Both the position numbers and the translations under genes were made by a program. A stretch of 64,000 bases of DNA from Geosiphon pyriformis uo1. Lineage: Eukaryota; Fungi; Glomeromycota. Below, in pieces: positions 8,224 through 46,600 of the stretch. The notes under the pieces were generated by a model. The model had not been told where the DNA came from and did not search any database. It was given only the letters and a program-made list of their open reading frames with translations. The stretch lies in assembly GCA_016748015.1 (NCBI GenBank), contig JAAOMT010000749.1, positions 35,023-99,022 of the forward strand, in the 5' to 3' direction. Position 1 is the first letter of the stretch. The number at the start of each line of letters is the position of its first letter.

Positions 8224-9558
8224 TCAGGAATTAGAACGTAAACATAGACCCATAAATTTTCCAAAATAAGGCCCAAAATGTGAATCAGGTTCATTTGGAT
8301 ATCTCCTTTGAGGTTTTTGATTGCAATACTGAAAAATTTAAATGTTATTATTGAAGTCAAAAAAAGCAAATAAAATAATGTATACGATCTAAATATAGTT
8401 GTTACCGGATTCTCTTCTAAATATTCATTAGTCATTATTGAAAAACATTCGTAAACTGTTTGTCCTAAAGTGTTACAATCGCAAGAAGCAGAGTTTGATA
8501 TCCAAAATTCTCGTTGATGATGAAGATAACCATCTTTTCTGGAAGGAAGCTGTGGGATTAAGTCATCACTATGGGTAAATCGAAATGTTTTTGGAATAAT
8601 TTGGTTGACATGATCAGCAAATTGAATATTTCCAAGTCTTGGTTGGCCAAAAGTCACTGTCCTTACATCTGCCTTTGTAATATCGAACTTGAAGGCAAGA
8701 GCAGCGAAAATCGCCCATACTATAAAAAAATATTTGTTATTTTAGGCATCAAGGTGAGAATTATAAAGTGAAAACTTACCAGCACCTTCACCATGACCTG
8801 TGAAATAAAACCAATATTTTTCAAATCTATTATCTGATACCAGATCCGCAATTGTTCGAACTAGTGAACGTTGAGCAGATAAAAACCGATAATAAAAATG
8901 TGCATTAACAGAAGCACCTTCCACATCTTCAAACTGAGTAAGCCGTGTTTTAGCAGGGCTCCAGTCTTCTATGCTGATTTTATTCCCTTTGAAATAAATA
9001 ATAATAATGTTTGGTTTTAACCAAAATATTTCTTTAGATTCCGGCTTGATAACTGCATGGGCTGTTAGCATTCAAACAAAGATCACATGAGAAGTCTTGA
9101 AGTGAGAAGTTGAATTGATTCGTAGTCATAAAATTTTTACCATATATTCCGTCACCAAATTTGAAACTTTCATCAAGACAATAGGCTTTTTGTGCAAATC
9201 CTGCATGTTCTTCGAAGAAATTGAGCAAATCCTGATCAGTTATTGCCACTTTTTTTTCAGAGTTTTCTTCTGTAGAACGTGGCATCATCATAAACATATT
9301 TGATCGATTGAAAAATTTATTGGACGTTCTGAATTTTCGCTGATCTTTGAGTTTCACCTCATCACGAAAATGAATCGTTCTTGTTTTGTTTTCTGAAATT
9401 TTTGTTGCAGTATTTTTTTTGGTCCCAGGGCAGTTGTGGGGCATAGTGTTGTATAAAAAATTTGTAAATTTTATCAAATGATTCAAAATTTTTAATAATA
9501 TCAATATTAAAAAGAAGTAAAATATAAATCTAAACTTGGAGATTGTGAATGGAAACAT
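8224..9558 (-). CDS. Class-3 lipase-fold protein A, catalytic Ser replaced by Gly; 4 exons (9558-9141, 9061-8780, 8719-8406, 8328-8224; 372 aa)
   Basis: Spliced ORF of 1119 nt. N-terminal hydrophobic segment; motifs AYC, FTGHGEGA (elbow, normally GHSLGG), TFGQPRLGN, THSDDLIPQLP, HHQREFWI, SHFGPYFG. Confidence 0.85.
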
Positions 9559-10921
9559 ATCTAAAAGGCAAAATGAAAATAGGTAACCAGGTTACCTATA
9601 ATAAATTTTAATGAATCTTTATTTCAACTAAACAAGCAAAGATCCCGGAAAAAATTTATCGATCGCAGCAAGAAATAAAATGTCGATTCTGTTATTTACA
9701 ACTTTATTTCCCACACTCCAAAGCCAATGAATTTTTAACCCGCCCGAGAGAATCTTTAATTTGAAAAGCAAGTCAATATCTGATCACAATGAAATTTACC
9801 ATCAGTAACATGAGAGATCAAAATAATTCCTGCCTGTAAATTCTCAAATACCCTAACTTGGTTTTTATGACTTTTTACATTATACTTATAATTTCAAAAT
9901 AATTCACAGTAACTGCGAAAAAGGACAATTAAGCCGAGAAGATTTTTTACGGGGAATCTGTAGAATTATAGAAAATTAGAAAATAACATCAACAGTTTGA
10001 CCTTACAAAAATAAACTAACCAACTCCCTATTCGGATGATTTTTATTTGAGACGTCAATATTATTTGTTTTAGCATTTATTGAAGGTTTGAAAGGTGACG
10101 ATTCCCCAGTTGGCCAATTTGTTTTTATACCCTGGGGGGGGGGGGGGGGAATTCAGAAGTTACAGCCAATTTTTCATGAGCTTAAAGAATTTCCGCAACA
10201 TATAATGACTAATAGATTGCATGCTTGCCTTTAATAATTAATTCACATTTAATTATCCCAATAATTCCAAATATCCTCCCCAGTTGCGTGACTTTCAAAT
10301 TTTCTTTCATGACATTTTTCCAGTCATTAGGTGTAATCTGTAATATTTGAAGTTCATAAATTTCGGAAATATCAGGCAGAATACCAAGTCCATGATTTCG
10401 GATCTATGACTTTAGGGCTATCACAAGACATTAAAAGAATTAAGTCCTCTTTATTAATAAAACTTTCCCCCTTCAATAAAGCGAAAAGCCTCAAATATAT
10501 TTTCTTCATCAAAAAGTGTTTTTGTGATATTGCAGTTAGCAAATATGATGAATTAAAGTTTTAAAGTATTTTAATTAGTTTAGCTACTTACGTAACAATT
10601 ATGAATCTCATGTACTTGTATACAATTATAAGGTTCATTCTAAATTTAGGCAATTACTAATAACAGATTCAAAAGTGATATCAAACTAGAGATGTATTAA
10701 TCATTTTAATATTAAATCAAAATAATACTAAATAAACAGTTTCAATTCTCACAATCTGTGGAGAATCCTTGTTCAAAGCGACATATTTCTAGGTAAGCGG
10801 AGTTCAAATTTAGGTACAACTCTTCTAATGAAATCTTTTAAAAAGGAACACGATGAATTTAAATACGAAATCAGAGTGAGAAAATGATTTAAGTCATAAA
10901 GTCGAATCAGCTGTACAAATA

Positions 10922-11870
10922 CAGTGCACCGCGAAAGTATTCGACCCCCCTCCGATAAAGTTATAAGAAATGAATTTTATTTTATTTGTAATTTTACAAA
11001 ATATTCTGATCATTAATACATTTTATAATAACTTCAATTAATGCATCAATTCGATTTTTCATACTACAGACAAGATTTGCAGCAAGTTCATCAGGTAAGC
11101 GGATTCCACTCTTTTGCTAATTGTGCTTTTAATCCTGCAAAGAGTTTCAATTTTTTTGTGATGTTAATAAATAGATTTTGGTCAGGTGACATTGATGGCA
11201 ATGGGATGACATTTCTTCAACAATGTTTTGAATCGTTATCCTCTTGCAAGATCTAATTTATAGTCCCGAAAAACACATCAACAAATGGAAGAAGAACCTG
11301 TTTGTCTATTGTAATCATAAGATCAGCATTGAAATTGTGTTGGGAGCTAACCAACTCATCAAAACCGAAAGCTTTAAAACAGCCCAATATACATTGACCT
11401 TTAACGGATGTTTCACAGACCGGAATAATTTTCTTCGTCCAGGAAACTGTAAAACTTTTTAATGTTGGTCGTGGTTAAAGGAATTGTGCTTTCGTCTGAA
11501 AATACAATTCAAAAACTTTATAATTTTTAGCCTACTATAAACTTTTTTTTTATGTTTGTCAATGAGTAACGGTTTGGAAATTTAGCCATATATATTACCT
11601 TCATCTTCACCTTTACGTAAACGTCGTTGAATAGTGCCCCCGTTGTATATTAGTGGCGGTTATATTAATTTCCTTTTTTTCAAAGTTGTACAATTTCGGC
11701 AATTTGTTTTGATATCGTGATTCGACTTTGGTTGATCACTCAAGTCTTTTTGTTTCCTCCCACTTTTTAACCCAATAAAGTGCAAGTCCAAGTTTCAGGC
11801 CTTTGGAATTTTCATTAAAAAATTATTAGCATTTATGAGATTTTTTGTCTTTGGAAAATCTTTACACTCA
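10922..11870 (-). mobile_element. Degraded Tc1-like transposon relic
   Basis: Minus-strand remnants VFSDESTI (~11490), LQEDNDSKH (~11235) and PSMSPDQN (~11185). A TA|CAGTGCACC.. end lies at 10922. The other TIR was not found, so the upper boundary is approximate. Confidence 0.7.
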
Positions 11871-12844
11871 ATTATGAAACATTATTCGAAATAAAATCAG
11901 CATTCAAGATTGTGAATTAAAAGTAAATAAGGGCGGAATCTATTGATGAATATCTAAGAAAATTTATTATAGCCAAGTGGGTAACAAAGATTTGGTCAAC
12001 GCAAATATCTTTTTTTCTTTGTGTATTAATGGAAAAAAAAAGCATTTCTAAAATTCTCGACTTGGCACCAAGTCATTATCAAAAAATTCATTTGATGAAA
12101 GTCCAATTTTGAGTACTGCTTCTGATTATCACATTTAATTGAAAGAAACTTACCAACAAAAGCAGCAACGTGTTAAAGTGATTGTGACATTTGATATTCA
12201 GCCTTTTTATGAATGAAAATTTATTTTAGTGGTTTCATTATATTTAATTATGTTCGGAAAAAAATTGAACGGCAAAGAAAATTTTACAAATTAAAGATAT
12301 TCAAAATATTTTGTTTTAAGAATAAATTTTATTGGGTTAAAAAAGATTTTTCTTGTCTGATAATTAATTATAAAAAGATAAATATCCTGTTTTTGAATTT
12401 GCTCTGAAAGGCTAAACATTTTGAAAAGTGAAGTGAATCAATGATTTCTTTAAAACTTTTTTCGAAGTTTGATAAATGAAGTCGTAAGATTATAGTATTC
12501 AAAAGGTTTCTTGAGTTTTCATAGCGTTTTTCGTAGCTTAGTACAACACTAGAAAATTGAGATCGTTTTGTCTTTTATAGAATTATATTTATGAGTTTGT
12601 TTATAAATAGAGCTAGCTTACCTAACGAGAAAAATTATAAGTTCTTTCAACAGGTTTTCAAAATATCTTATATATAAGCAGATTTACTCTGTCTTCTCGT
12701 ATTAAAAAATATTTTTTTGTAATTTTATGCTTTCTAACTTAAATAGATTCAAAAATTATACACAAAATATTATAAAAAACATTTTTCTATCTGACCCTCC
12801 CTTTTAACGCCCTTAAATTTGGCCTTTCCACTTCAGCGATTACT

Positions 12845-13245
12845 TTGGTCAACAGACATCAAGGCGACTTCAACGGAAACGGCAATTGCAATGGAAATGT
12901 TGGAGATGGTAACGGTAATCTTAATGGAAATCTTAACAATGGATCCTTTAACGGCAATGGTAATGGAAACTTGAACGGGCGTAGCTTCAATGACAGCAAA
13001 AATGGAAATGGAAACGTTGGTAATGCGAATGGAAATGATAACGGTAATTTTTAACAGTGGTTCTGCCAATGGAAATAGTATAATGGCAACAATAACTATG
13101 GTTCATTGAACGGTAACAACAATGAAAATGGAAATTTTAGTTACTGGCGATAGGGCGGTTATTATTATACTTATCCTGCTACTCGTTACTATAAAAATGG
13201 AAGTTTTAATGGAAATAATAATGCTATTGAAAATATAAGTGGTTA
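12845..13245 (+). pseudogene. Frameshifted Asn/Gly-rich 13-aa tandem-repeat protein gene
   Basis: About 7 units of consensus xNGNxNGNxNxGS continue across two frameshifts (~13050, ~13080). No intact start codon was seen. Confidence 0.6.
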
Positions 13246-15921: not shown

Positions 15922-16365
15922 TGATTCCTTTAAAAATTAGTTGCTTTCTCATTTCATTTGATATAAACTTATAAATAAGTGTCTATTTGTGACATTATTT
16001 CAATAGAAAGACTCTCTCCTACAACAAAAGCATTGTCATCATGGGATTTGACTGATTTCTAAATGCCAATATTAAATATTCTCATCGAGCTACTTTCAAG
16101 CTCAGAAAAAATTAATGGCTGACAAATTTAAGATTTAATTTGTTCCAAGGCATATTCGTATTGATAATGCTTTTTAGATATACTTAAGATTTCTCTGGAA
16201 ATAAGATTGCCCTCGAACAAGTCCTAATTTTTTTTAGCAGAAAGAATTTGATAAAATAACTAGAGTAAAACAGATACACCTATCGTTTTTAAGATCTTGG
16301 CTAATTGAGCAAAAGAAAGTTTTATGAACATATACCGTTGAAAAGGTTCCCTTTCCTGCTAAATT

Positions 16366-17934
16366 TTAAATGGAACGATCTCTACAACTTTTCATTTTTA
16401 CTCCAAAGTATGGTCCGTCATGAGCCCATCGAGTGAAACTTTTCATCGAGTTAATGCATTCCTATAAATTGAAAAAAAGCTCGAAAAAAGATTGGACTCA
16501 GCAGATTTCAAAACGTCCAAAGTGAAAGATTTGACACCTGATTTTCTGACATTGTTTCCGTGTTCAATTGATTAGGAACATTACATATGTATGTTTCCCC
16601 ATCCAGCTTATTAATCCAAATCTCTATTCCACCATGGGCATATAGTGTACGATTTCTGGGCGTTGTTGGCACATCATCGTTGTAGTGATTTATCCTCCAA
16701 ATATTCAAAAAAAGTGATGCATATCTGGCAAATGCACTATTTCCAATACGAGGGACCCCATATGCATCAACCTGTATAAAAATAGCATATCTTTCTCCAA
16801 ATTTTTTTCTGAATTCTTTGTTAATGTCCAAGGCTCCAAGTATCGCATAAACTTTTGAAGAGATGAGAAGATATTAGATGCCAAAGGCTTGTTTTACAAC
16901 TCAAACGTAATTGTATTGAGATACATACCAGCCCCGAGGCTATGTCCAATTAGTAAAACCTGGATTCCAACGTGTTTTGGACCATGCATCATTGGATCAG
17001 GGTCGAAAATTTGTTCTATTAAAGGGTTAACTTTCAAGAGAAAATTATTCCTCACAGCAAGAAAATTCTTATAAAATTGTTTGTGAACCCTAGCATTCTG
17101 CACATCGGAATAAGGTACCAAGGTTATTTGATCTTTTTTATCAATAACGTATCTGTCCAAATTTTGCTCATCCCCTTTCATGGTAATAATAATCAAATTC
17201 CCTTGCAATTCGAATTGGGCTAGAGAAAGTATTCAGCCAAGATTTAAAAGCTCTGATTAATTTGAAGCTTGTGTTCAAATTCATATAATGGAATTACCTT
17301 GGATTTTATCAGAAAGTTTAAAAGCTGTCCCGTTAAATGAACAATAAGCACGATTTGCTTTATGAGCAAACTTTTTAAAGCTAGCCATTGCAGAAGCTTT
17401 TATTAGGTATTTAGTCGGAGGATTGAGATTCCGAATTATTGCGTCGGGTTCTGCATAAGATATTCCATGATTCTGATCGATATCTTGACTTAATTTTATT
17501 TCTTGCTCTATCAATCGAGGAAGCTCGGAAAATCCTTGTAGATTATGGTACATGTTTTCCCAATTTTTGCTTTTTGTCTGCGTGCCTTCAGTAATTATAA
17601 AGTTTTCAGATGGAAGGATGCTTTGAACAGGATCTTGGTACTCATTAACCGCAATTTGATTTTTTGGCAATGGACTTTCAATATTTAAATCTATATTTTG
17701 TGGTACTTCAATTATATTTGGTAATGAATTTTCAAAGAAATTCAAGTCCTTTTCACTGTTAAGATATTCTTCAGTCATATATGGTGTAGAATCTTTGCTC
17801 AAGTAATTTGCTTGAACTTTTACATTATTCGAAAATCTAGCCATCAGCAAAATTATTGCAAAGGTCAATACGATAATTGAGTGGCTCTGTATTTTTTGCC
17901 ATTCACACAGACCACGATTGCTGATTTTAAACAT
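16366..17934 (-). CDS. Class-3 lipase B with intact Ser-Asp-His triad; 4 exons (17934-17298, 17219-16929, 16851-16538, 16461-16366; 445 aa)
   Basis: Spliced ORF of 1338 nt. N-terminal hydrophobic segment and long pro-region; motifs AYC, LIGHSLGA, AYGVPRIGN, NHYNDDVP, HGGIEIWI, AHDGPYFG. Confidence 0.88.
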
Positions 17935-18641
17935 TGTTTTTTTGATGGTAAGCTATTTAGAGGAAAATACGAGTATAAATAGGGAACTTTAAGATTTTCA
18001 ATAAATTTACAAACTCAACAATCAATGTGATAATATTTTTTTATCGGCATTTCGGAAAGCTTTTGACAGGAAGATTTTCAGTTTTTTAAGGATTTTGTTA
18101 TTTGTATATATTAGCTCAGACACAGCACCTGATATTTCGAATTGATTTGAATGAATTAAAATCACGATTAAATATAAAGACAAAACTCATCTTGCTCTTT
18201 TCAATGCATTGCATAGGTTTTAAATTTTTAAAATTTCCTTTTCTTATTACATGTACTAGAAAATATTGTAAGCCAAATTTAATCTACTAGTGATTTCCTT
18301 AAAAAATACAAGATTTTTACTTTATAATCATTAAAAAAAAAATTTAATGAGAAATTTTTATGTTTCTATGTTTTTGTTTTACCCAGGATTGTCATTTAGC
18401 AAAGATTCGGAAACGCAATTTTAATCTTTGTTTCTATTTGGAAGTATGCCTCTCACGATTTAAATTTTTTAAAAAAATTTATTCAGATATTATTATAACG
18501 AAAACACAATCTTTATCTATTTAAAAGATTTTCCCCAAATTCATTTTCCCCGAACATTAATTAGAAATCAAATATATAAGTAGCATGTCCCTTTTTCATT
18601 TATTCATTTATCTTATCTTTAAAATACAAAACATCTCATCA

Positions 18642-19019
18642 ATGGCTTACTTCTTTCCAAGAATATTTTTAATCCTGTTTCTCCTTCATTTTCTTTTTTT
18701 CAATCAATTGTCAGCTATACCCATTGACTTATTCAATTATCAAGACGATTTGGACCCATTTCAAGTAGATTACCTAGGTTTTGATGATCCCATTTATTTC
18801 ATCAGTGATACTTCAGTTGGATCTCAAGAAATCCCTCCTCAAAGTGTCAACAAAAAGAATTCTCAACCAGTTAATGATGAACCAAAGTATCCTCAGGTTC
18901 TAAAAAAACCACAATCTTATTCTATAAATGATTCAAGGTGCTTTAATACAGCAGACCTTTCTATAATTGAATTGTGCACTAAGCCAGATCCAAATGTTAA
19001 AGAACCTATCGTTGAATGA
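18642..19019 (+). CDS. Small secreted orphan protein (125 aa)
   Basis: Signal-peptide-like start (MAYFFPRIFLILFLLHFLFFNQLSA|IP), acidic/Pro-rich body and two C-terminal Cys. An in-frame upstream ATG lies at 18585. Confidence 0.6.
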   Translation: MAYFFPRIFLILFLLHFLFFNQLSAIPIDLFNYQDDLDPFQVDYLGFDDPIYFISDTSVGSQEIPPQSVNKKNSQPVNDEPKYPQVLKKPQSYSINDSRCFNTADLSIIELCTKPDPNVKEPIVE

Positions 19020-19549
19020 AAAAAAGCTTTAAAAATGTTTTTTTGAAAAGTGCGTTATTTCAAAGACAAACAATTAAGGTTGCTTTAAATATACTTTGTT
19101 ATTTATCGAATGATAAAAGGCTTTGTAGTTAATTGATGGATTTGTTTTCCAGAATCTAGTTTTTGAAGGCTATAAAATCTAGTAAGGTTTATAACAATCT
19201 TGGGCTAAAAATTTTAAATTGTCAATAAGGAATTAACTTGAAATTTTTTAATTTATCAAAGATCACTGATATCACTTTTATATTGATTATTGAAAAATTT
19301 AAAATAATATATAATCAAAGATTCAAAGTTCAAAAACTTTAGCTTTTAGGTTTTTTAATTATCAATGATAGTATTTAGGGACTTTTTACTTCAAATTTTA
19401 AAAGTCATTTATAATATTGTATTTGAAAAAATCATTACAATTAAATTTATTCACATTAGTTTTTTTGATCTTAATAAGCTTATAAAATTTATTTCAAAAA
19501 TATCAGTTGGGATAATAGGCAAGAGCAACCATTTTATGATGCTTACTAA

Positions 19550-20338
19550 TTAGCGTAGCTTCAAATAGGATTCTTCGAAAGGTTAGCAGCAAATTTATTT
19601 GAAAACAGTTTAGGAGCCCTTATGTGACAATTGATATACAATAAAAAAAATGACAATTAGCAAGATTAATACTCACAGGTTTGCATAAGCAGAAGCGTGT
19701 AGTAATATGGATAAAATCACTTTAAAGACTATCGGGAACGAATATTTTTTTCTGACAAAGCAACTTTTCAATTATTCAGCACTGTAAATATCGATACAAA
19801 AGTTGAAATCTATGTTCATGTTCACGGCTGCGACCAGATGGTCGTATTCCAAAAGACCGGAGAAAATTTTGAGCTTGGAGATTTTCCGTACAAGGTAAAA
19901 CGAGATTTTTTTGCTTAAAAGAGAGGATTGATGGTCCTTTTTACGTTTGATATTCTAAGGAAACACCTTCCGAAGATTAAAAAGATGTTGAGTAATAATT
20001 AGTGGTTCCAACAAAACAATGATCCGAAGTACACCAAAGAAATTTTCGAGAACTTTCTGACAATTATCGATTGCCATCCACCACTCCTGGCCTAAAACCT
20101 ATCAAATCATTATTAAGAAGAATATAAAGGAGTGGGAGCCAAAAATATTTTGAAATTGAAGCAATGGTAAAAGATTCCACCTTATAAATAACTTAGTAGG
20201 GTCAATGAAGGAGCGATGTCAATTTGTGTTTGAAAATAATGGCAAACGTTTTACTAATATTTTTATACATGGTTTAGTCGAATGGTTATAGATAAATTAT
20301 CAAATAATTTCTTCAAAAGATTTTTGTAATAGACTATA
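19550..20338 (+). mobile_element. Highly degraded Tc1-like relic related to the 54674-55916 element
   Basis: Nucleotide similarity to the 55 kb element: GCATAAGCAGAAGCGTGTAG vs GCATAAGCGAAAACGTGTAG; TTTTCTGACAAAGCAACTTTTCAA vs TTTACTGACGAAACATCTTTTCAA; CAACAAAACAATGATCCGAAG vs CAACAAGATAATGACCCCAAG. Boundaries approximate. Confidence 0.65.
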
Positions 20339-20385
20339 TATACAAATAGAATATTGAAATTTACAAATTTAAAGAGTGCAGTCCC

Positions 20386-21725
20386 TTAATAAGGTCTGTC
20401 TTGATCCAGACAACTTCCCATCTTTATAGTAAAGTAAGGACCATTGTTCGACTTGGATTCTAATCTGGAAAACTTCTGATTACAATGCTAAGGTAAAGTA
20501 GTAAAAATAATTTATGATGAAAACGTCTTTATGGCTGAGGAAAAACTCAAATAAAGTAGTTCTTACCTGGCTTTCTTTCATAAAATATTCATTATTAGGC
20601 ATTTGTATTTCAGGTCCTGGACACCAAAAAACTTCCTCTTGATCGCAATCACAATTTTTATTAATAAACATCTCTAGCTTGTTGTGTTCATAGATGTTTG
20701 AAATAGTGCTCGGAGGCATTGTTGGGACAAAATCGTCACTATGCGTTACTCGTATTACATTCAAATTTATTATATTGTCATTGATATATTTTGCAAAAAG
20801 TTGGTTGCCAATGCGTGGTTGACCGAATGTCACTGCTGAAAGATATAAACCTTTTTGTAGATTCATCAATTCGAGTAAAGCGAAGATAGCGTAGACTTTA
20901 AAAATTTCGATTTGGAGAAAAAAAATGAATAACGTGATAGTGTCGATATTAAATTTTGAAAGATTCTGTACCTACCACCACCTACTCCATGACCAAAAGC
21001 AAAAACTTTTTTTATTCCACTTGCTTGAATAAGTTTTATGATCCGTTTTGATATTCTGAGCCCTGTTCCTAGAAAATCCTCATAAAAATTTTTATTTACT
21101 TTGGCTCCCTTGACTCGGCGATAGGGAATCATTTGTAACGGAAAAGAGCTCCATTGTAATTGGTTCAATTTGACTGACGAACGAATTGTTAACACTATAC
21201 CTTCATTTTTTATTTTTATAGAAGCTGAAAGGATGATAAAACCGGCAAATTTCATTTGAAAAATTTTTAAAATATGTCATATTCTGATTAAAATGCCTTG
21301 ATTGATTTACCATGGATCCCTGGTCCTATTTTATCCAATTCAGGAATGCAATAGGCTTTCATTGCGTAATAGGCGTACCTTTTATACTTTTCTAAAACTT
21401 CGATTTGATTGACGGGTATTTTGAAATCGTCATTTCCGTTCCTGGCAAGTAGTACATTTGGGGATTCTTTCCTTCTTTTGGTTAATTCAAAACTTTTGCT
21501 TGAAGAAATTGTTTGAACTATTTTGTTACTAATGTTCAAGTGTCGTTCAGTATTTGTTATAGTAGTTGCAGTATGGTTAATATTGTTCATCCCTGATTGT
21601 CTAGATATATATTTAAGGTCTCCTTGAAAAAAAAATTTCAATAATGTACATTCTGGAGAAAGGAAAATAAAAAAAGTCCTTAATACGAAACTAAAGAATA
21701 ATGTAAACAGATATAGCGAATTCAT
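20386..21725 (-). CDS. Class-3 lipase-fold protein C, Ser->Gly and His->Asn; 4 exons (21725-21311, 21224-20976, 20895-20567, 20487-20386; 364 aa)
   Basis: Spliced ORF of 1095 nt. Motifs AYC, AFGHGVGG, TFGQPRIGN, THSDDFVP and C-terminal SNNGPYF, where the paralogues have xHxGPYF. Confidence 0.85.
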
Positions 21726-24157
21726 TGATAATTTTATCAAAAAAACTGTATCTGAAGAAATTATTATCAAATCGGGGGATCCGTTGGTTTTATGAAAAAT
21801 TAAACAAAAAAAATGCAAAAGATCAAATTAAATCTTTGCAAGTATTTATCGTTATTTTCATTTTAAACCATTGAGATTGAATATAAATATATATTTGATT
21901 TATAACATCAAATGACTTGTAAAAGGAATGAATGAATACAATGAAATTTAGAGTAAAATACACGAAAAAACGTGATATATAGCATTTCATATCTTTTAAA
22001 TAATTCGATTCAATGTGATTATTATTTGGGGAAACCTACAATTTGACGCCCCCGAAAATCACAACAAATAAATCGGAGAAAAGAAACATAATAAATATTT
22101 AATGGAATTTTTTTATTTCGTCAGATCTCATAAAAATTATGCGACGAAGGATTTTTTAAACGGAAAAACTCTTTAAATATAAATGAAATAACTTGATGAA
22201 AGAGTCTTGAGACCCAAAAAATGATCACTTGCTTATTTTATTTTAATTATATGTTTATAAAAACTCATTTATAGTAATAATATTTGTAAGTAAATTATAA
22301 TGTAAACATGTGTCCAAGAATATATATTAATATTGTACTTAACCGAATTAAGGTTATTATGAATTAACTGATTTAAAAAATTTTTAATCTAGACAAAGAA
22401 AGACTCAAATTAACACATTACTTCTCATCTGATTTTTTTTAAAAAGACAGATGACAGCTTTCAATTGCATGATACTTTTAAAGTTTATCAAAACTTGATT
22501 TTATTCGATTTTAATGATTTTCAAAAAATAAAATTTGTGCAAACATAAACATTGAATTGAGAATTTGTATTCCAAAAACTTTTTAAATCAAAAATTATTA
22601 ACATATCAACGTTCATAAATTTTTATACATAAAAATTGCTTTTTACATTTTTTTTCTCAAAGTAATTAAGATTATATTTAAAATTTGATGAAATTCTTAA
22701 AATTCTATTTACAGTTTATTTTTTAATTAAACATTAATAAAAATAAAAAATAATTTTAAATTTCTCAATATTTTAGAATTTTAATTCATACAAAAAATTT
22801 ATTTAAAATCATATTTAAAGGACAAAAATTAATATATATAAACATTATTTGTCTTTTAAAATCTTTGTAATAATTTTGATTCAATATTGAATTTTTAAAA
22901 TATATTTATATCATTCTTTGATTATTTAAACCATCAAAATAAAAGAATAAAAATTTGTTTAAAAAATAACATTTATAATTTATTAATAGCTATATATATG
23001 ATTACTTTCTTATTCTTGTTTTTAATCCAGTTTTTTTTAATAAAATTTTCATTTCTTTAAAATTAGCATTTTAATTAATAATTTTGAATTTATTTATTAT
23101 TAAGGTATTTATTATAAATTTAAAATCTATTTCTAATTAACTATGATTAATATCTTGTTTAAATTTTATTATAAAAAATAATAATTAATATTCATTCATT
23201 TTTAACTAATTAAATTTGTATTGTAAAAGAGCAAAATATCTTAAAAATTTCAGGATTTAATTATATAGTCTGGTATAAAGCTTTTGTTAAGATTTAAAAT
23301 CAGTTCTAAAAAGTCAAAAGTTCAACCAATTATCCATTCTGAATTTTAAATTGCTTAAAGTTATTTCTGCAAAATAAAGACATTGATCTTTGTTTCTTAA
23401 ACAATTAATTACCGAAAATTGTTTCATCCAAATTAATTTTTTATAAAATAAAACTAGGAACTTTTCTTGGCATCTAAAAAAAAACCTTTATTTTACGAAT
23501 AAATTTGGAAGATTATTGTAAACCAAATTAATAAAGTAATAATAAATGTTTGGCAAAGAAAATTAATGTGCACGAGAAAGACAAAACTAGCTGAATGTAG
23601 AATTTTTTGAATTTTCAAATCAAACAATTGTAAAATATTAATGGCATACAATAATATTACAAAAAAAATTTTGAACACAAAACAAAAAAATATTTACATT
23701 CTATCCCTATTATATATTCTATACTTGGGAATTTAGTCTAGAAGCTGGTATCATTTTAATGTCACGTCTCTTATTTCTGCATAGACTCAAAAAAATTGGC
23801 TATTCAACATCTTTTTGAGTTTCGTTGCATGGGGAATTATATCAAATTGAGAAAAACCTTTTTTCAAAGAACAATAAAATCAACGGAGATTTTCGTAAAA
23901 CAAGAAAATATTATGTAGATTAATTTAATAGAAAAATGGGAATGTTGCAGTTCTCCCACAAAGTGAATTTAAAGCCGAATCGAATTAAGAATTCATAAAG
24001 AACATTCATGCTGTATGACATAAGGCATTGTCTCACAAATAGCTGATCAATAATATTACCAGATCTTGAGTATTTAAATTAAACGATCTCGGTATACAGG
24101 AAAATTAAATCATTTCGTTGTTACAAAGTTTAACCACTGGGACAAACAAATTATTTG

Positions 24158-24940
24158 ATGATGAAAAAGTGTTTATCATGTTCCACTGAAAAATTTACTA
24201 TGTTGGCAAATGAGATTTTAGGTGTTTGTCGAGAAGGAAATGATTATTGGAGCACTTCTGCACCGAAAATTCAACAAATCAAAAAAAGACTTTTGGCGAG
24301 TGACCAATCACCTGAAGAAATTTTCGCATTAGTACACGATCATTATTTTCAACCATTATACACCTCATTAATTGGGTTCTTACATTTTCATGGATTTGGA
24401 ACCGAGGCTGATAAAAAGGTTGCATTTAAATGGTTTCAGATTGCGGCCGAAACAAGTGACCCAGCAACACTCTACGAGCTAGGATTCTGCTATTGGGGTG
24501 GTACAGGTACCAATTCTGATTTATCAATAGCACTTTCGCTGTACGAACAAGCTGCCTTGGGTGGTTTTAAGCTCGCACAATTCAGCCTTGGTTATGCCTA
24601 TTTTCACGGTTATGGCTTTGAAGTTAATTTTCAACTGGCGTTTCAATGGTTTGAAAAGAGTGCACAAGCCGGGTACCCAATTGGACAGTATTACCTCGCA
24701 CGTTGCTATCGACACGGACTTGGAACGAGAAGAAATACAACTAAAACACTTTTTTGGTTTATGAAATCAGCTGAAGGTGGATATATCCATGCTCGTCTAA
24801 AACTGGCAAAGCGAATTTACAAAGGCGAAGGAATTCAACGTGACATACATCATTCTCTAAGATATCTCGTCGCATCCTTGAAAAGTGATGGATCTATTCC
24901 AATAGTAGAACTCGAGCAAATATTACTCAATGAGCCTTAA
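24158..24940 (+). CDS. Sel1-like repeat protein
   Basis: About 5 Sel1 repeats (LGFCYWGGTGT, AQFSLGYAYFHGYG, AFQWFEKSAQAG, YLARCYRHGLG, WFMKSAEGG). Intronless. Confidence 0.88.
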   Translation: MMKKCLSCSTEKFTMLANEILGVCREGNDYWSTSAPKIQQIKKRLLASDQSPEEIFALVHDHYFQPLYTSLIGFLHFHGFGTEADKKVAFKWFQIAAETSDPATLYELGFCYWGGTGTNSDLSIALSLYEQAALGGFKLAQFSLGYAYFHGYGFEVNFQLAFQWFEKSAQAGYPIGQYYLARCYRHGLGTRRNTTKTLFWFMKSAEGGYIHARLKLAKRIYKGEGIQRDIHHSLRYLVASLKSDGSIPIVELEQILLNEP

Positions 24941-26622: not shown

Positions 26623-27912
26623 TTAGTATTGGGTATGTGGATGAGGTTGATTATAACCGTAATTCTGTGGTTGAGTATTGTTATGCGGTATAAATTGTGA
26701 GGGTGTTTCATGATATTGAGGTGCAATTACAGGTTGCATGTGTTGTATTTGTTGTCCCGACGCATTTTGAAAATGAACAGGAGGCAGATAATATTCTTGA
26801 CCTGGGAGTGGATGATTTCCTTGATTTGGGAATGGATGATTTCCTTGATTTGGGAATGGATGATTTCCTTGACCTGGGAATGGATGATTTCCTTGATTTG
26901 GGAATGGATGATTTCCTTGATTTGGGAATGGATGATTTCCTTGATTTGGGAATGGATGATTTCCTTGACCTGGGAATGGATGATATCCCGGACCTGGGAT
27001 CGGATAGCTTCCTTTAAAAGGAGCAGGTGGCGGATTATGTTCTGGTCCTGAGATCGGATTATTTACTTGGATTGGGATTGTAGTTGATCCACTTGTAATT
27101 GGGGTCTCGGTTGCCACTTGGAGTGGCTCCTCTTCTTTGCTACCAAACGCATTTTTGACCGCTTCAACCACAAACCTCCCAAACATAATAAATCCAGTGA
27201 CTAGAGCAGCCAAGACAAGGTTACGCATTTTACTTTGTGCGTCGTCACTGTCGCTTATACCTCCATAATTGGAGGCAAGAGCCCAAGCCATAAACACAGG
27301 GTATGCAAAACATATTAAATCAGAAACAAGTGAAAGACGATTAACTTGTTTTTGTGTTATATTCTTATGACCAAATAAAAGATATCCTTCTTTTCTGCCT
27401 GTATTTCAAGCAAATTCAAATAGATTAGACATATGTCATTTTCTAAAATAAGAAAAATTTCTTTAGACTTACAGAAAATGACTCCCATTATTTCAACAAA
27501 TTTTAATCGACCTCCCGTATAATGATAAATTTGAAAGAGATTAGCAATTCTTGGTAAACATTCGAATATTACAATTGCATTATAGACGCCTTTAGCAATA
27601 CTTCCTTGTTCTACCTTTTGTATATTAAACAAAAAATTTAAAACTTTGAGTGGAATGAACTAATTTCAAGACCATTAAACAAAGCCCACATAAAAAAATG
27701 TTTACATTTTCATTAAATTTTCCTATTAAGATGAGACTTGTTCCCAATGTAAAACAATTTGCAAGAGCAAAAAGACTCCAATAAATTTTTTTCCAAAATG
27801 GAGGATTTTCCATCGGTGATTGTTTTTTTTTTGATATTTTTTCATTTTCTGGTACTTTTTGATTGCTATCAGCAATTTGACTCATTTCTTGGATGTGAAT
27901 TGGCTGAGCCAT
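26623..27912 (-). CDS. Multi-pass membrane protein with a Pro/Gln/His-rich repetitive C-terminal tail; 3 exons (27912-27706, 27614-27473, 27398-26623; 374 aa)
   Basis: Two GT..AG introns join three ORFs in frame (1125 nt). About 4 hydrophobic segments precede a low-complexity tail. Confidence 0.75.
26797..26998. repeat. 24-bp coding minisatellite, about 8 copies, encoding P(N/G)QGNHPF on the minus strand
   Basis: Unit TTGA(TT/CC)TGGGAATGGATGATTTCC is directly visible. Confidence 0.95.
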
Positions 27913-30344: not shown

Positions 30345-32088
30345 ATGAAACATTGGAATGTATTCAATTTATATTTTACTGTGTACCTATTAAATATATT
30401 TTCAGTCGTCATGAGTCAAGAAAATAATGGTAAGCTAATAAAAGTACATATATTTCGTTTGGTTTTGTTGAATATTTAATCAATCAAAAAATTATTTAGA
30501 AACAAAAAACGTCATTTTTCTTTCTTTTTACTTATAACATCTCTAAAGCACAGTTTTATTCCAAATATAAAATAATTCCTCATATATTTCACAGAGTAAT
30601 TTCGTTTTAAGAACCAAATATAAAGAATTTTAGAATTTCACAAGAGCTTCAACTGCATCTTACGATCCAAACTTGACTAATTCCGGAATATTTTGAATTT
30701 CAATATGTGTTAACTCAGCTACCCCAAACCAAAATATTAGCTTGGAAAATCCACCTAAAGTTTTGGCGAATACCTGCGTTAGAAACACAGGATCTCTTGA
30801 GTATTATAACTTAGGATTGCACCTTGGAGCACTTTTTATTATACTAATAGCCAGCTCTCTTGGTAAGAAAAAATGTGCCTAATTCACCGAATTTAAAATA
30901 TTTTTCCAACTTTTTATTTTTTACTGATGATAGGAGTGTTTTTACCGGTTCTCTCGGAAAAATATCCAGAGTTTAGAATTCCACGTTTTTTCTTTACATG
31001 TGAGTATAAAAATTTTTATTTCACAACTAAAAATAATTTACTCGAAATAATCAATTTTTTCGATACAATATAACAGTCGCCAAGCATTTTGGCACAGGCG
31101 TTATTATTGCCACTGCTTTTATACATGTAAAATATTTTTATTCAAGTATAATGTTTTTTCTCAAAATTTTATTCGTGTTCTCAAACATTTCATTGCTTAT
31201 CAGATGTTACCACAAGCATTTATCAGTCTAACCAACCCTTGTCTACCAAAGATATGGTCCAATACCTATCCAGCATTTGCAGGAGCATATGCGATGGGGT
31301 CTGCCCTGTTTATCTTTTTAATTGAATATTTCGCGATGAAGCTGAATGATGAATACGAAGAGGAACAAGCAAAAATAGAACAAAATAATGGTAGTCTTGA
31401 GGCTGGTCAAAATCATTCAGAGCAACGCCATTCACATGGTCACATTGTACTTTTGTCGACACGTACTCAAGGTCTTTGTGTCATAATTCTAGAAGCAGGA
31501 ATTTGCTTTCATTCAATCATAATTGGAATGGCACTGAGTGTTTCCACTGGCTCTAAATTTGTTTCGTTATTATGTGCATTGATCTTTCATCAGGTATCTA
31601 TTCATTAATAAAGAAATTCTCACAACACGTGATAACTGATCAAATAATATATAATTTAGATTTTTGAAGGCTTAGGTTTGGGAGCACGTATCGCCGAACT
31701 TTCATTTGCGAAACGCAGTTGGCGACCTTGGTTAATGTCTTTAACATATAGTTCAACAGCGCCAATAGGAATTGCAATTGGCTTAGGCATACGGTATTCG
31801 TATAACCCAGAATCCGAAAAAGCTCTTATCATTCAAGGAACCTTGGATTCTATATCGGCTGGAATTCTTTTATATGCAGCGATGGTAGAATTATTGGCTG
31901 CCGACTTCATTATCGATAAGAAGATACGGAAATCTAGTAAAAAGAATCAATTGTTTTGTTTGATGCTTGTCTTCTTAGGGGCTGGTTCCATGGCTTTGAT
32001 TGGTATGTCAAATTTCTTTCAATAGAATCTCTAAAACTTTTGAACAATTGAGCAATATCTTTTTTTCTAAAAAGGTTTTTGGGATTAG
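30345..32088 (+). CDS. ZIP-family (Zrt1-like) zinc/iron permease; 7 exons (30345-30429, 30719-30862, 30934-30999, 31077-31126, 31204-31593, 31660-32002, 32075-32088; 363 aa)
   Basis: Motifs YNLGLHLGALFIIL, AKHFGTGVIIATAFIHML, His loop HSHGH, LEAGICFHSIIIG, FHQIFEGLGLG, DSISAGILLY. Spliced length 1092 nt. Exon 1 is the least certain. Confidence 0.92.
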
Positions 32089-36291: not shown

Positions 36292-36942
36292 ATGACTAAT
36301 ACTCTACAGATGAAAAGTTTTCTAAAAAAATGCGTGAAATTCTCTCGGAAACGGCACACAACCAAGCTTTCAGAGACCGAAATAATGTTAACTTCTGAAG
36401 TTCTCAAATTGTACCAGAAAATGACAGATATTAAATGGGACCAAGATGTCGTTAAAGTTATTAAAAAATGGATTGAGGATAATAATGAAACTGCTAAACG
36501 AATTTTTAACCTATTACGACTACAATCAAATTCATCGGAATGTGCCAGTCTCCTTGGATTTTTTTATCATTACGGAATTGGTGAGGAATATGATGAAACA
36601 AAAGCTTTCAAATGGTACAAAAAATCAGCTGATGAAAACGATGCTTTTGCGCTGGCTCAGGTTGGATATTGCTATAGCACAGGAACTGGTACAGAATGTA
36701 ATGATTTAAAAACTTTTGAATATTATGAAAAAGCTGCAAATTTAGGTGATCCTCAGGGAGCTTATCATTTTGCTAGATTTAATTTAAGTTACAAAAGTCT
36801 CATTTGGTATCAAAAATCGGCTGAGAAAGGGTTCCTGCCAGCAAAGTTGAAAATTATTGGTTTCTTTCATACCGGAACCGGTGGCGTTTTAAGAGATAGA
36901 CATATGGCCTTTCGCTTAATGAGACAGGGATACAGGGAATGA
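36292..36942 (+). CDS. Sel1-like repeat protein
   Basis: LLGFFYHYGIG, KAFKWYKKSA, AQVGYCYSTGTG, YYEKAANLG, WYQKSAEKG. Intronless. Confidence 0.88.
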   Translation: MTNTLQMKSFLKKCVKFSRKRHTTKLSETEIMLTSEVLKLYQKMTDIKWDQDVVKVIKKWIEDNNETAKRIFNLLRLQSNSSECASLLGFFYHYGIGEEYDETKAFKWYKKSADENDAFALAQVGYCYSTGTGTECNDLKTFEYYEKAANLGDPQGAYHFARFNLSYKSLIWYQKSAEKGFLPAKLKIIGFFHTGTGGVLRDRHMAFRLMRQGYRE

Positions 36943-37840: not shown

Positions 37841-39017
37841 ATGGTGGACCCTCAAGTATTTATGCGTTCAGCAGTCGCATGTTTTATAATGATTTTCTTT
37901 ATAGCTGCCGTCGTATGGTCTATATTATTGTTGTCCAAGGGGCGTTTTTTCTCTTACACGATTGTGGTTTTTGGAGATTCTTTATCTGTCACAAATTATA
38001 CCAATACTCCTTCAGGTCTTTATTATAAAGGTATGATCTTAAAAACGAAATATAAATTTTTTTTTAATTCTTTTCTAATTTGAGTGCCACATTTATTAGG
38101 GCGATTTTCGAATGGCCGTGTTTGGGTAGAAGATGTCGCAGATGCAATAAATTCCAACGTTGAAAATTATGCATATCCCTATGCAACAACTGATAATGAT
38201 ATTATCAAAAGCAATTACAATATTTTTAATTCGCAAAATAGCACAGAGGAGACAGTATCATCAATTGTGGACCAAGGTGCAGAAAAAATAAATTTTCATC
38301 TAATCAAATAAATATTTTTCAAATATTTTTCTCACTTTATCTTTCAATTTACAGTGGAAGAATTCCGTAAAAATGGAACTGATGCTGGTAAATACCAGAC
38401 AACGCACATGATATGGGCAGGGTCAAACGATTATATGGTAGATATCATACATCAGTTTTTCCTTCGCTTCATGATTGCTAAGATTACTCAACTTCTTGTA
38501 GCTTATTGTTGATCAAAATATCACAAATGTGAAAACAGAAGATATTGTTAAATCGATAGAAAACTCTTTGAAAAACCTCGCTTCAGCGGGTGCTCGAAAA
38601 TTTTTGGTGAACAATCTACCACCCTTAGACTTTACTCCAAAGTACGCTAATTCATCGAGAGAGAAAAAAGAAACATTGCATAACCTAATTCTGGATCATA
38701 ATAATAAGCTTGAAATAATGGTGAATACTTTTACCCTGACAAGTAGCCGAATTTACGCTCGCGTTTTCAATATTCACAATCACACAATGAATGTAATTAA
38801 TGATCCGGGAAAGTATGAATTCGAAAATGCCAAAGATCCATGTTATGTCAAAGACAATGATGGTAACTCTGCTCAATGCTCAAATCCAAAAAAATATGTG
38901 TTCTGGGACGACATTCACCCCACTGCTGCATTTCATCAATGGTGGGCAGATCAAATAATTGACTTTTTAAAATCACGGGATGGGTCATGTCTTTTTTCCA
39001 AAATATGTAAAATATAG
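37841..39017 (+). CDS. GDSL/SGNH lipase-esterase with an N-terminal membrane anchor; 4 exons (37841-38030, 38100-38276, 38355-38437, 38502-39017; 321 aa)
   Basis: Blocks VFGDSLS, GRFSNG, WAGSND and FWDDIHPT are all intact. Spliced length 966 nt. Confidence 0.92.
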
Positions 39018-42000: not shown

Positions 42001-42955
42001 TTAATTTTGTATAAGATAAATGAAAATTGATTATTAATCATTAAAAAAAACTATCCAGAACATAAAATGCTATGCTCTATCTTTTAAACAAATTTATAGA
42101 TTATAAATAAATCGATTACTTTTATCATATTTTATAATCATGAGATACATTGCATTTGTGTATGTTTGAGTTCTGATGTAATTAGCCCTCTTGGCAGCAA
42201 ACTAATCTATTTTGGCAATCGTTCCCAATGAACCAGGTTTTAAGGGAAGTTTTAATTTGTAGACAAAATTTTTGGACAAAAATGACAATTTCATAGTTGA
42301 ACAACAAATAAAAGATCGAAAATTTACTTTTCAGATACTTTTTATTATAATCAGCTTTGTTATCACTCCTTTCTCTCTCGTGCGTGACACCACCGTCATT
42401 TGTTTGGGGTAATGATTGTGATAAGTTGTTAAACCAGTTTGATTCGGGGATTTCAATCAGTAATAAATTCCGAGATGATAAATTAAAATTGTCGTCTATA
42501 GTGATAAAAAGCTTAAACAAAGGTTTCCTTTAATTGCCCAGCCACCCTCCGGAACAGGATATCTGATATACCCAATGATGTGCAGGAACACACATTTAAT
42601 AATTAGCGATTGTCCTCGAGAAGTCATTTTCCTAAAAAGGGAATATCATGGAAAACTCATGTTAAAAAAGCTGTTTCTAACCCCAAGCTTCTCAACGCAT
42701 ACATTTTAATTTTTCCCTTCCATTCATCCATTTTTTTTTGTTTCTTTTCTTCTCAATAAGCCTTAGATAAAACCAAACAACTACCTAATTTTTTCGTCAT
42801 CAGCCGAATATAATATAATCATTAGAAAACTAGTTCGAATAGGAGTATAAATTAATACAATGCTTTACGCATTACAATAAAAATCAACTGTAAAAACATA
42901 AAATAATTAATTCTCAAACTTTCTTATTTCCAAAACTCTTCTACTTTTCGTTGAA

Positions 42956-44801
42956 ATGGCTACTCCTCCACAATCAAGTTCATCACCTCCTAATGAATCA
43001 AATACAAATTCATATCTTGAGGAGACCTCAGATATAGATTTACCCCTTACACACTCTGATGAATCTCAAATATTCTTTGAGAAAACAGAAAAAGGATTTT
43101 GGAGTCGTCATTGGTGGAAATTTCTCGTAATTTTGATAATCGCATTAGCTGGTACTGGAATTGCTGTTTACTTTCTCTGGATAAAACATCATAATGTTAA
43201 CTCTTCCAAATCAAAGTCGAACAATCCTGTGGATTCTAAAAATTCTAATACCATTTTTGATGATTCAAAAGCACCAAATAATTATACTTCACCCTTGAAT
43301 CGTACATTTCCTTATGGAAAACAAGCGATAAGAGGCGTAAATATTGGCGGTTGGCTTGTGCTTGAACCTTTTATTACACCTTCCTATTTTCAAAATGCGA
43401 TTGTTGATGAATGGACTTTGTGTGCTACCCTGGGCCCTGAGAAGGCCATGAAAACTTTAGATCATCATTATTCAACTTTTATCACTGAAGCTGATTTTGC
43501 TGAGATGGTAAAATATGGGTTAAATCACGTTCGAATTCCACTTGGGTTCTGGGCGGTGGAAATTTTATCTGATGAACCTTACGTGCCTAAGCTTAGTTGG
43601 ACTTACTTGTTGAAAGGTATTGAATGGGCAAGAAAGTATGGTCTTAGGGTATTAGTTGAACTACATTCTGCACCTGGAAGTCAGAATGGATGGAACCATA
43701 GTGGTATGTAAAAAATATTCTGAAATGGAGATTTTCACATTTGAAAACAATATCACTAATGCCAGACATGGTAATAGAACAATGCTAAAATTATTCTTTG
43801 TAAATCCTAGGAAAACAAGGAAACATTAATTGGATTCAAGGAACAAATGGTAGAGCAAACGCTGACCGTACCCTTCGTATCATTGCAGCTTTAATTAGCT
43901 TTTTCAATCAACCTAAATATCAACATGTCATTCCCATGTTTGGAGTATTGAATGAACCTCGCATCGGTTACCAAGGCTTGGGATATAACGATGTCAAACA
44001 ATTCTATCTAGATTCCTATAAGCTTATTAGAAATATCACGGGTAATGATAAAGAATTTACGCCATGGTTGGTGTTTCACGATGGGTTTGCTGGACTGGAT
44101 GCCTGGAGTGGTTCCATGAAAGGAAGTAACAGAGTTGCATTGGGTAAGCTTTATAGGGCACTAATTCTTTGAAAAAAGTCCAAAAAATTAATTCTTATGA
44201 TTCACCTATAATTTTTATCTTTTAGATATACACACCTATATCATTTTCGACCCGAATTTATTTACGCTTCCTCAATCCAATCTCTTGGTATTCCCTTGTG
44301 CTGTATGGGGTGAAAGTCTCACAAAAAGTACGACTAATTTCGGCCTAAGTATAACCGGTGAATGGACAGTTTCAACTGATGACTGTGCCAAGTACCTAAA
44401 CGGCGTTGGGGGAAGTGCTGGATACGAGGGAAGATGTGAAAATTGTACTTGTACTGGTGCTGGGGATTATAAAAATTACAGCTCTGAAAAGAAGGAATTC
44501 ATGTTACAATTCGCCCAAGCACAAATAGATGCTTTTGAGCATGGTGGAGGTTGGTTTTACTGGACATGGAAAACCGAAAATCATGTAAATCCAACTTGGG
44601 ATTATCAGCTTGGCGTGGTAGGTATTAATATCTCAAAAATGACATAAATATCACCATTGTGAAATACTCATAAAACTATTCTTTTTATGTCTCTTACAGC
44701 AAGAAGGGTGGATTCCCAAAGATCTTCAAAACCGACCCCCTACTTGTAAACAACTTCAACAATTATATCCCGATGTTTATTTAAAATTAAAATCCAAATA
44801 G
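42956..44801 (+). CDS. Glycoside hydrolase family 5 exo-beta-1,3-glucanase-like, type II membrane-anchored; 4 exons (42956-43703, 43811-44143, 44226-44617, 44700-44801; 524 aa)
   Basis: IRGVNIGGWLVLEPFITPS, NHVRIPLGFW, LHSAPGSQNGWNHSG, LNEP (acid/base), FHDGF, DIHTY, GEW (nucleophile), GWFYWTWK. Confidence 0.93.
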
Positions 44802-45094
44802 AAATCATTTTGAGCTATTAAAATTTAGTCAAATTAGTTTTTGACTTTGTAAAAAAATGATGAAATAATTTTCATCCAAAAGCTTAGACGTTGGCATTTT
44901 TAAATCATTATGTAATTTTAAAATCGGACACAGAAGTAATAAAATTTAAACTCTAATCTGAAAAGATAGGACTTTTGCTTTCTTATCAGATCTTCATATT
45001 TCTAACATGATTAATAAATTTGGTAAACATTGGAATGTTCAAAGGTACTTATTTATAGTAGAAGCTACTCAAAGATTTTTCAAAAAACGCCACA

Positions 45095-46600
45095 ATGTCA
45101 ATGACGAAAACCTTGTTTCTATTTCCAAAAAATAGAATCAACAAGCAATTTTTATTCTTTATATTTTGCAAAACTTGTGTTCTCACATTTTTATTGTCAA
45201 AAATATACATACTTTTAATCAAAACTAAAGGGACCTTGGATGAGGGTATAAATTTGTATTTTAATTCACGAGAAAAATTAATGCGATTCAAAGGCAATTC
45301 TTTTACATCTGATCAAGATTTCGCAGGAATTCAAGGTTTTTTTCCATGTTTCTCACAATTAAAATTTTGTAAAATTCCAACCAAACGATATTTTAAAAAG
45401 ACGAACGGTATCAAAAAATAACAAGGAATATTAATACGGAATCAAGCTCGAAAAAACAAGTTCAGCTTGAAACTCCCTTACTTCAACCTGCGAGACAGGT
45501 TGACTTGAGCTTGTTTGAAAGAATGGCTACAGTTGCAAATGGGGCCTATTGTATCTCTCACAATCTAGTTGAGACCCTTTTCAACGATGTCGCTGGTAAG
45601 ATTGGTCTTTGATCTGATCACTTGACATCATTCAATCTGGATCTAAATGTATTTTTACAATTAAGTGGATGCTGTAATTGACATGCAACATCAAGTTATT
45701 ATTGTGGCTTTCAAAGGGAAGACTTTGACAAAAAAAGAATGGCTTAAAAGGCAAATTACTTTGACGAGTTTTCAGTTTGGGAGGTGGCCATATGTTAAAG
45801 CTCAAGTTGACCAAGAATGGTACAAAGATGTTCAGCTTATGATGCCATTTATATTTAAAAGGATAAATTCACTAGTTTTTATAATGAGAGATAATATTTG
45901 GGTCGGAGAGAAAGAGGAATTGAAGTTTGTGAACGTGTTTTTTACAGGGCATGGAATTGGTGGAGGTTTGTGATTTTGTTCAAAAAAATTTCTAATTGCT
46001 GATTTTTAATTTTCCACAATTATTTCTCTTAATGTGAATGAAAAAGCTTATGCAGTTCTTGCCGCGATAAAATTTGAAGACGAAATAACTCGAAAAGAGT
46101 CAAAATTACCGCCAGAAATAGGTGATGTTAGAGCCTTTTCATTTGGACAACCACGGATTGGTTCCCCTGATTTTGCTAGACAACTTAGAATGAATTATGA
46201 TGGATTAATTTATCGCTTAACACATACAAATGATTTTGTACCTCGGATCCCTAATGGAAAAAATAGTGGGTTTTTGCATCATCTCAGGGAATTTTGGATT
46301 GGATACCCAACTTGTGATTGTGAACTTTCAGATAGGCTTAACACAACTCCTTTGATTGATGGTCAATACAGACTTTATGATTGTGAAAAATATTTTGACG
46401 ATACTGGAACAGTAGGTGAAAACATGGTATGTTATCAGTTAAAATTTTTTTGTTATTGTTAGGCTCGAACGAAGTTTTTATCCTCTTTCTCACTTTGCTA
46501 GGCGTGCAACGAAGGGCAGGAAGATACAGAACAAACGAATTTGATTCATAGAGGCCCATATTTTGGTATTAAAATGGGGGAATGTATCCCAGAAGACTAG
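45095..46600 (+). CDS. Class-3 lipase-fold protein D, catalytic Ser replaced by Gly; 5 exons (45095-45335, 45401-45595, 45666-45965, 46047-46426, 46502-46600; 404 aa)
   Basis: Spliced ORF of 1215 nt. Motifs AYC, FTGHGIGG, SFGQPRIGS, THTNDFVPRIP, HHLREFWI, IHRGPYFG. The first intron is the least certain. Confidence 0.83.

Follow-up and report, generated by a model that had tools for sequence, protein, structure and literature searches.

Fungal class-3 lipases (PF01764), including the Rhizopus, Rhizomucor miehei and Thermomyces lipases, Aspergillus feruloyl esterase A and Malassezia SMG1, are the closest described systems to four genes, A to D, that lie in a 64,000-nucleotide stretch of DNA from Geosiphon pyriformis (here called the window: contig JAAOMT010000749.1 of assembly GCA_016748015.1, record positions 35023-99022). 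These lipases share with the Geosiphon proteins the fold (Z score 24-27; root mean square deviation, rmsd, about 2.4), the nucleophile elbow, the catalytic acid, the position of the lid, the H-x-G-x-Y-F His motif of SMG1 and, in the case of B, a prepro-like N terminus. Unlike them, most Geosiphon members lack the Ser nucleophile, the oxyanion Ser/Thr and the His of VHxGF, and the Geosiphon family additionally has a CxC motif and a Cys loop, is anchored at the N terminus and counts more than 100 paralogues in one genome. Our work indicates that A, C and probably D belong to an expansion, apparently restricted to G. pyriformis, of proteins with the class-3 lipase fold that do not perform serine hydrolysis.

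Noncatalytic alpha/beta-hydrolase proteins are already known as a kind. The lipase-like domains of EDS1, PAD4 and SAG101 use the class-3 fold (Z 17-20 to a model of A) without hydrolysis, and SAG101 lacks the catalytic triad. However, these plant proteins are intracellular, carry an EP domain, occur in few copies and have no close sequence relation to the Geosiphon family. The EP domain is absent from A to C, in which only Lipase_3 passes in Pfam and which end a few residues past the last Cys. Neuroligins, neurotactin, glutactin and insect yolk proteins also have the alpha/beta-hydrolase fold without the nucleophile, are secreted or membrane bound and have a binding role (PMC3531081), but they are animal proteins of the cholinesterase-like or pancreatic lipase-like branches and form small families. 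Tomato MKS1 resembles the Geosiphon proteins in its small, non-nucleophilic elbow residue and its retained His; it differs in being a cytosolic member of the hydroxynitrile lyase subfamily and a proven decarboxylase.

In 2021, Malar et al. reportedly found (Current Biology) that Lipase class 3 domains are strongly over-represented in the G. pyriformis genome, and we take genes A to D and their family to be this expansion. Our literature search, which did not extend to the text of the genome paper, found no paper describing the loss of Ser in it. G. pyriformis is a member of the Glomeromycota, sister to the Ambisporaceae, and its partner is Nostoc and not a plant; fatty acid synthase was not found in any Glomeromycota genome analyzed, that of G. 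pyriformis included (PMC11134847).

Results

A tabulation of the elbow residue across the family members retrieved, in line with a proposal in an earlier note on this DNA, uncovered a family far larger than the four genes of the window. The nucleophile position of 163 family domains is occupied by Gly (131 domains), Ser (11), Ala (8), Arg (4), Asp (3), Phe (3), Asn (2) or Tyr (1); in outside lipases it is Ser in 63 of 64. Among the non-Ser members the catalytic acid is Asp in 98%, and the catalytic His, identified by aligning the H-x-G-x-Y-F motif to SMG1, is present in 84%. The oxyanion Ser/Thr after FRG is found in 100% of the outside lipases (all 50 that cover the position) and is replaced in the family by Pro, Lys, Glu and others. 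VHxGF of the outside lipases has become VDxxW/F, so that its His is gone, and a Tyr has been gained at elbow position +5; the CxC motif and three further Cys are 98 to 100% conserved, and the extra Cys are of the disulfide type. We rejected the possibility of an alternative conserved nucleophile beside the elbow, where position +1 is I, V, L, E or S.

Pfam and the sequence agree on the four Lipase_3 genes, which have the elbows and lie at the places reported in the earlier note (Table 1). The PF01764 scores are 75, 56 and 63 bits for A, B and C, respectively (cutoff, 22), exon 3 of D alone scores 37 bits, and mutual identity is 27 to 33%. Only B has the Ser nucleophile of G-H-S-x-G. By alignment, the catalytic Asp and His are present in A, B and D, and C has Asn for the His. 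The oxyanion position holds Asn, Asp, Val and Lys in A to D, and thus Ser or Thr in none, B included. Having lost the Ser, A, C and D cannot act by the serine hydrolase mechanism, a possibility excluded by established chemistry. To this extent A, C and D are "catalytically dead," as had been claimed, and the loss of the His in C had been overlooked. B, previously regarded as a triad-intact paralogue, does retain Ser, Asp, His and VH and has no CxC motif; however, it lacks the oxyanion Ser/Thr, and its activity is uncertain.

The retained acid and His suggest an alternative, namely, that the proteins are Ser-independent enzymes in which the change to Gly leaves room for the Asp-His pair to activate water or remove a proton, with decarboxylase, lyase or slow hydrolase activity as the outcome. 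The proportions of Asp and His given above would fit, and MKS1, with Ala in place of the nucleophile, decarboxylates 3-ketoacids (PMC3531081). However, the His is gone in about 16% of the members with open frames, C included, the oxyanion residue is scrambled, and the elbow residue can also be a bulky Arg, Phe, Tyr or Asp. Noncatalytic members, moreover, often retain the His (PMC3531081), and we consider this alternative quite improbable.

An AlphaFold 2 model of A (predicted local distance difference test score of 89) matches the Rhizopus and Rhizomucor lipases with Z 27 and an rmsd of 2.3 to 2.5 (6a0w: Z 27.5 over 235 residues). The fold of B, C and D is assigned by alignment, and the solved structures closest to B are again those of Rhizopus and Rhizomucor lipases. 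Crystal structures of class-3 lipases in which the catalytic Ser was mutated to Ala contain bound oleic or ferulic acid (1gt6, 2bjh), so ligand binding by the pocket does not require the nucleophile.

Three introns at homologous positions, in phases 1, 1 and 0, are common to A to D and measure 60 to 86 nucleotides in A, B and C. In each of the four genes, intron 2 comes directly after the elbow motif; splicing therefore leaves the elbow residue as it is, and a splicing artifact is ruled out. The RNA evidence comprises four shallow contigs from one public run, covering window positions 16200-22000. Intron 3 of B and intron 3 of C are spliced in these contigs, and the loose end of the C contig is the end of exon 2 with the Gly codon, which rules out RNA editing back to Ser for C. 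A, B and C are 100% identical to the database proteins P0006, P0004 and P0017, which begin at an internal Met and omit the hydrophobic N terminus.

The claim that all four open reading frames (ORFs) are uninterrupted holds for A, B and C but is uncertain for D. Read from its ATG at 45095, D runs into a stop at 45419-45421, and its lipase core is in a different frame. The 5' part (45095-45335) joins the core only through a candidate extra intron (Table 1), and splicing this intron out gives a 404-amino-acid ORF. Its position is not homologous to those of the family introns, its donor and acceptor fall near the 20th and 7th percentiles of real introns, and it has no branch consensus, which is present in 71% of 55 family introns. 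A 1-nucleotide frameshift near 45390-45420 is equally possible. Because extra introns also occur in other family members, D may be intact. D was absent among the database proteins retrieved, although its exon 3 formed part of the query.

The family was collected with a profile of the four exon-3 sequences, searched against 1.84 billion representatives; the best 150 matches contained about 135 family members, and a second search added 11. The aligned total of 147 proteins, with 178 domains or pieces, is a lower bound, and the serine-poor family thus has at least 147 proteins. Accession look-ups of 23 family proteins gave G. pyriformis in every case, and the same species is the source of the 20 named top matches of the second search and of the 12 loci that were fetched; the remaining members were assigned by similarity. 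Matches from other organisms in the second search all have GHS, and all are without the CxC motif. No family member from other Glomeromycota was found among the best 150 of the 1.84 billion representatives, a search that did not address Ambispora and Archaeospora DNA directly, and three word-based searches found none either. With B and the basal member P0145 as queries, searches of this type retrieved only one ordinary fungal esterase outside Geosiphon, and the ESM Atlas yielded generic class-3 lipase clusters only.

Family members are arranged in tandem clusters on many contigs. Multidomain lipases in the database were dismissed, as most of them are adjacent genes fused by annotation across pseudo-introns of 1.3 to 1.8 kb. 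NCBI models at four loci (L008, L010, L011 and L012) fuse neighboring family genes, in one case with malonyl-CoA decarboxylase, into false multidomain proteins, and they often begin at an internal Met, which hides the N-terminal anchors. Two multidomain class-3 lipase proteins from outside Geosiphon, P0052 (Chromosphaera perkinsii) and P0129 (a Logan contig), have Gly at the elbow of some domains; they are without the CxC and GPYF pattern of Geosiphon and look independent.

Ratios of nonsynonymous to synonymous substitution rates (dN/dS) were obtained from two young paralogue pairs of family members other than A to D. The overall values are 0.41 and 0.71 by NG86 and 0.32 and 0.32 by YN00; old paralogue pairs give values near 0.3, with dS saturated. 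Pooled dN/dS is 0.38 (0.23-0.63) in the core and 0.42 (0.26-0.73) in the C-terminal part, and it reaches 0.91 (0.62-1.42) before the elbow, lid included. The core of the family is under purifying selection, and the lid exon evolves fast. The earlier note had named a dN/dS near 1, combined with a lack of expression, as the sign of decay; in these paralogue pairs such a ratio is seen only in the region before the elbow and not in the core.

The same data bear on the possibility that the genes are birth-and-death debris, that is, lipase duplicates drifting with little function in a repeat-rich genome. Repeats make up 64% of this genome (PMC9453076), D is perhaps frameshifted, some members are truncated or have odd elbow residues, and dN/dS before the elbow is relaxed. 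However, at about 30% identity and with synonymous sites saturated, the members still have their reading frames, their splice sites and dozens of positions that do not vary. The median identity within the family is 29% with frames open, and the chance of 260 open codons at this base composition is about 2e-9. In addition, the core dN/dS is below 1, B and C are transcribed, and the adjacent Tc5 and Tc1 transposase relics are broken by stops and frameshifts, as had been noticed before. Debris is an unlikely reading for the family as a whole, and we rate it as very improbable.

A fast lid beside a conserved core could also belong to noncatalytic proteins that do not bind lipids at all but act as diversified surface recognition, adhesion or decoy proteins, binding proteins or glycans (e.g., Nostoc envelope polymers or lipase inhibitors) via the variable lid and loops. 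The family size, the low median identity, the membrane anchors and the added Cys pairs are consistent with such a repertoire, and noncatalytic alpha/beta-hydrolase proteins such as neuroligins work in this way (PMC3531081). The conservation of the old active-site lining (Asp, His, elbow GH-x-x-GG and the Tyr at elbow +5), on the other hand, suggests that a small-molecule pocket matters, and we regard this alternative as possible but unlikely.

The hydrophobicity score KD15 of the N-terminal segment is 2.87 in A, 2.63 in B, 2.01 in C and 2.35 in D. It is about 2 or more within the first 50 residues in 16 of 18 family exon-1 ORFs with a full start, and 12.6% of null ORFs reach at least 2.0. By eye, the N termini of the basal members, B among them, resemble cleavable signal peptides followed by long pro-regions, and those of the crown members resemble uncleaved anchors with basic flanks. 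The conserved Cys and GPYF motifs and the hydrophobic N-terminal segments noted earlier are present, the latter with a hydrophobicity above AT-rich chance. Together with the core dN/dS below 1 and the spliced RNA of B and C, the enrichment of hydrophobic N termini supports the earlier view of the Ser-to-Gly forms as a maintained family of secreted or anchored proteins.

The phylogeny was computed from 71 rows under LG+C20, along with a larger quick tree. A, C and D fall into a crown clade (support 99/94), and B belongs to the basal lineages, in which Ser and Gly forms occur side by side. The Ser/non-Ser labels require 9 changes, at least 7 of which are forced by starred branches, and none of 200 bootstrap trees has a single change; hence, the GHG forms do not make up one clade, the possibility raised earlier, and a single origin of GHG is rejected. 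The root has moderate support (96/69) in a tree without a Glomeromycota outgroup. The four basal Ser members retain VH and have AGY codons (AGC in B), which a single transition turns into Gly codons. In most crown Ser members the pocket is remodeled, with Asp or Glu for the VHxGF His; the Ser codons in the crown are AGT (P0097 and P0144) or TCA and TCT (P0101 and P0065); the P0101 clade includes an Ala-bearing relative. We infer that an ancestral Ser(AGY) lipase lost its nucleophile several times. Ser was apparently regained more than once in the crown members, and an elbow Ser is therefore no proof of activity in this family. B would be a relic of the ancestral Ser(AGY) lineage, with about even odds of still being an enzyme.

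Table 1. Genes A to D and other features of the window
Feature	Position	Strand	Description
Gene A (G9A89_002130, P0006)	8224-9558	-	372 amino acids; elbow GHGEGA
Gene A exons	9558-9141, 9061-8780, 8719-8406, 8328-8224	-	
Gene A residues	8792-8790 (Gly codon)	-	Gly230 at elbow; Asp286 and His355 retained; N-terminal anchor, residues 11-25
Gene B (G9A89_002132, P0004)	16366-17934	-	445 amino acids; elbow GHSLGA; signal-peptide-like start, then long pro-region
Gene B exons	17934-17298, 17219-16929, 16851-16538, 16461-16366	-	
Gene B residues	16941-16939 (Ser codon AGC)	-	Ser306, Asp368, His428; Asp at oxyanion position
Gene C (P0017)	20386-21725	-	364 amino acids; elbow GHGVGG
Gene C exons	21725-21311, 21224-20976, 20895-20567, 20487-20386	-	
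Gene C residues	20988-20986 (Gly codon)	-	Gly218 at elbow; Asp276 retained; Asn345 in place of catalytic His
Gene D	45095-46600	+	Elbow GHGIGG; Asp and His retained
Gene D core exons	45401-45595, 45666-45965, 46047-46426, 46502-46600	+	Gly codon 45953-45955
Candidate extra intron in D	45336-45400	+	65 nucleotides, weak donor, AAG acceptor; or 1-nucleotide frameshift site
MFS transporter	2869-4459	-	
Tc5 and Tc1 transposase relics	5.8-7.1, 53.0-53.8, 54.9-55.8 kb		Broken by stops and frameshifts
Long poly-G runs	10134-10150, about 55410		Against a genomic GC content of 30%; possibly artifacts of sequencing or assembly
Small protein between B and C	18585-19019	+	Signal-peptide-like start, two Cys; no Pfam match
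Spliced RNA contig between B and C	19640-19968		GT-AG, about 101 nucleotides removed near 19679-19779; no ORF of at least 70 amino acids; possible noncoding or short-ORF transcript
Two Sel1-repeat genes and ZIP zinc transporter	24155-24940, 36292-36942, 31204-32025		Ordinary for this group
Membrane protein	26623-27912	-	Tail with an 8-residue Pro/Asn/His-rich unit repeated about eight times; no Pfam match
GDSL/SGNH lipase	37841-39017	+	N-terminal hydrophobic helix, GDSLS motif intact; fold unrelated to Lipase_3 genes
GH5 glucanase-like protein	42956-44647	+	Membrane helix; directly upstream of gene D
Helical protein	57522-58617	-	Long Gly/Ala-rich hydrophobic hairpin, by eye resembling an alpha-pore-forming fold; no Pfam match

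Discussion

The Geosiphon family has the features of an alpha/beta-hydrolase pseudoenzyme: the fold is retained, the catalytic residue is lost, and there are purifying selection (in other pairs) and expression (of B and C). What do the Gly forms then do? We hypothesize that they are anchored or secreted noncatalytic proteins that bind a lipid-like ligand without cleaving it, a proposal for which we see the chances as evenly balanced. The family proteins would enter the secretory pathway, and many members would remain attached through an N-terminal anchor that is not cleaved. Lipid-like ligands would be bound, without being cleaved, in the former acyl pocket beneath the variable lid, for capture, sensing or shielding, and one may speculate that Nostoc is the source of these ligands. 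Binding outside the cytoplasm would be consistent with a core that is conserved, a lid that varies, paired Cys and anchors. Several observations weigh against this hypothesis: one of the young pairs has a dN/dS of 0.71 by NG86 (0.32 by YN00), the RNA support comes from only four shallow contigs of one run, the changes in the pocket (Arg for the lid Asp, Asp for the His) might point to a ligand other than a lipid, and the retained Asp-His pair is also expected of a Ser-independent enzyme.

Only the apparent restriction of the family to Geosiphon suggests a possible role at the Nostoc interface. The earlier note had reasoned from the dependence of arbuscular mycorrhizal fungi on host lipids. Because the partner is Nostoc and no member turned up in plant-colonizing arbuscular mycorrhizal fungi, this argument applies only indirectly. 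A more far-reaching possibility, which we offer tentatively and think rather unlikely, is that the family forms a diversified receptor or capture repertoire by which Geosiphon recognizes compatible Nostoc or takes its lipid-like molecules across the symbiosome membrane. The nucleophile would then have been switched off and on repeatedly, with Ser lost by AGY-to-GGY steps and regained through AGY or via Ala to TCN.

Our analysis adds to the picture of this family the polyphyly of the Gly state with likely regain of Ser, an oxyanion residue that is gone even where the Ser is present, the contrast in dN/dS between core and lid, the loss of the His in C and the doubt over D. As this large lineage-specific expansion consists mostly of proteins that are not serine lipases, reading it as extra lipolytic capacity is wrong. 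The repeated loss and apparent regain of the nucleophile offer a natural series for the transition from enzyme to binder. G. pyriformis is a member of the Glomeromycota that houses cyanobacteria, and the recognition of Nostoc and the source of fatty acids are questions on which the family may bear; its more than 100 maintained pseudoenzymes of one fold are candidates for partner recognition or lipid capture.

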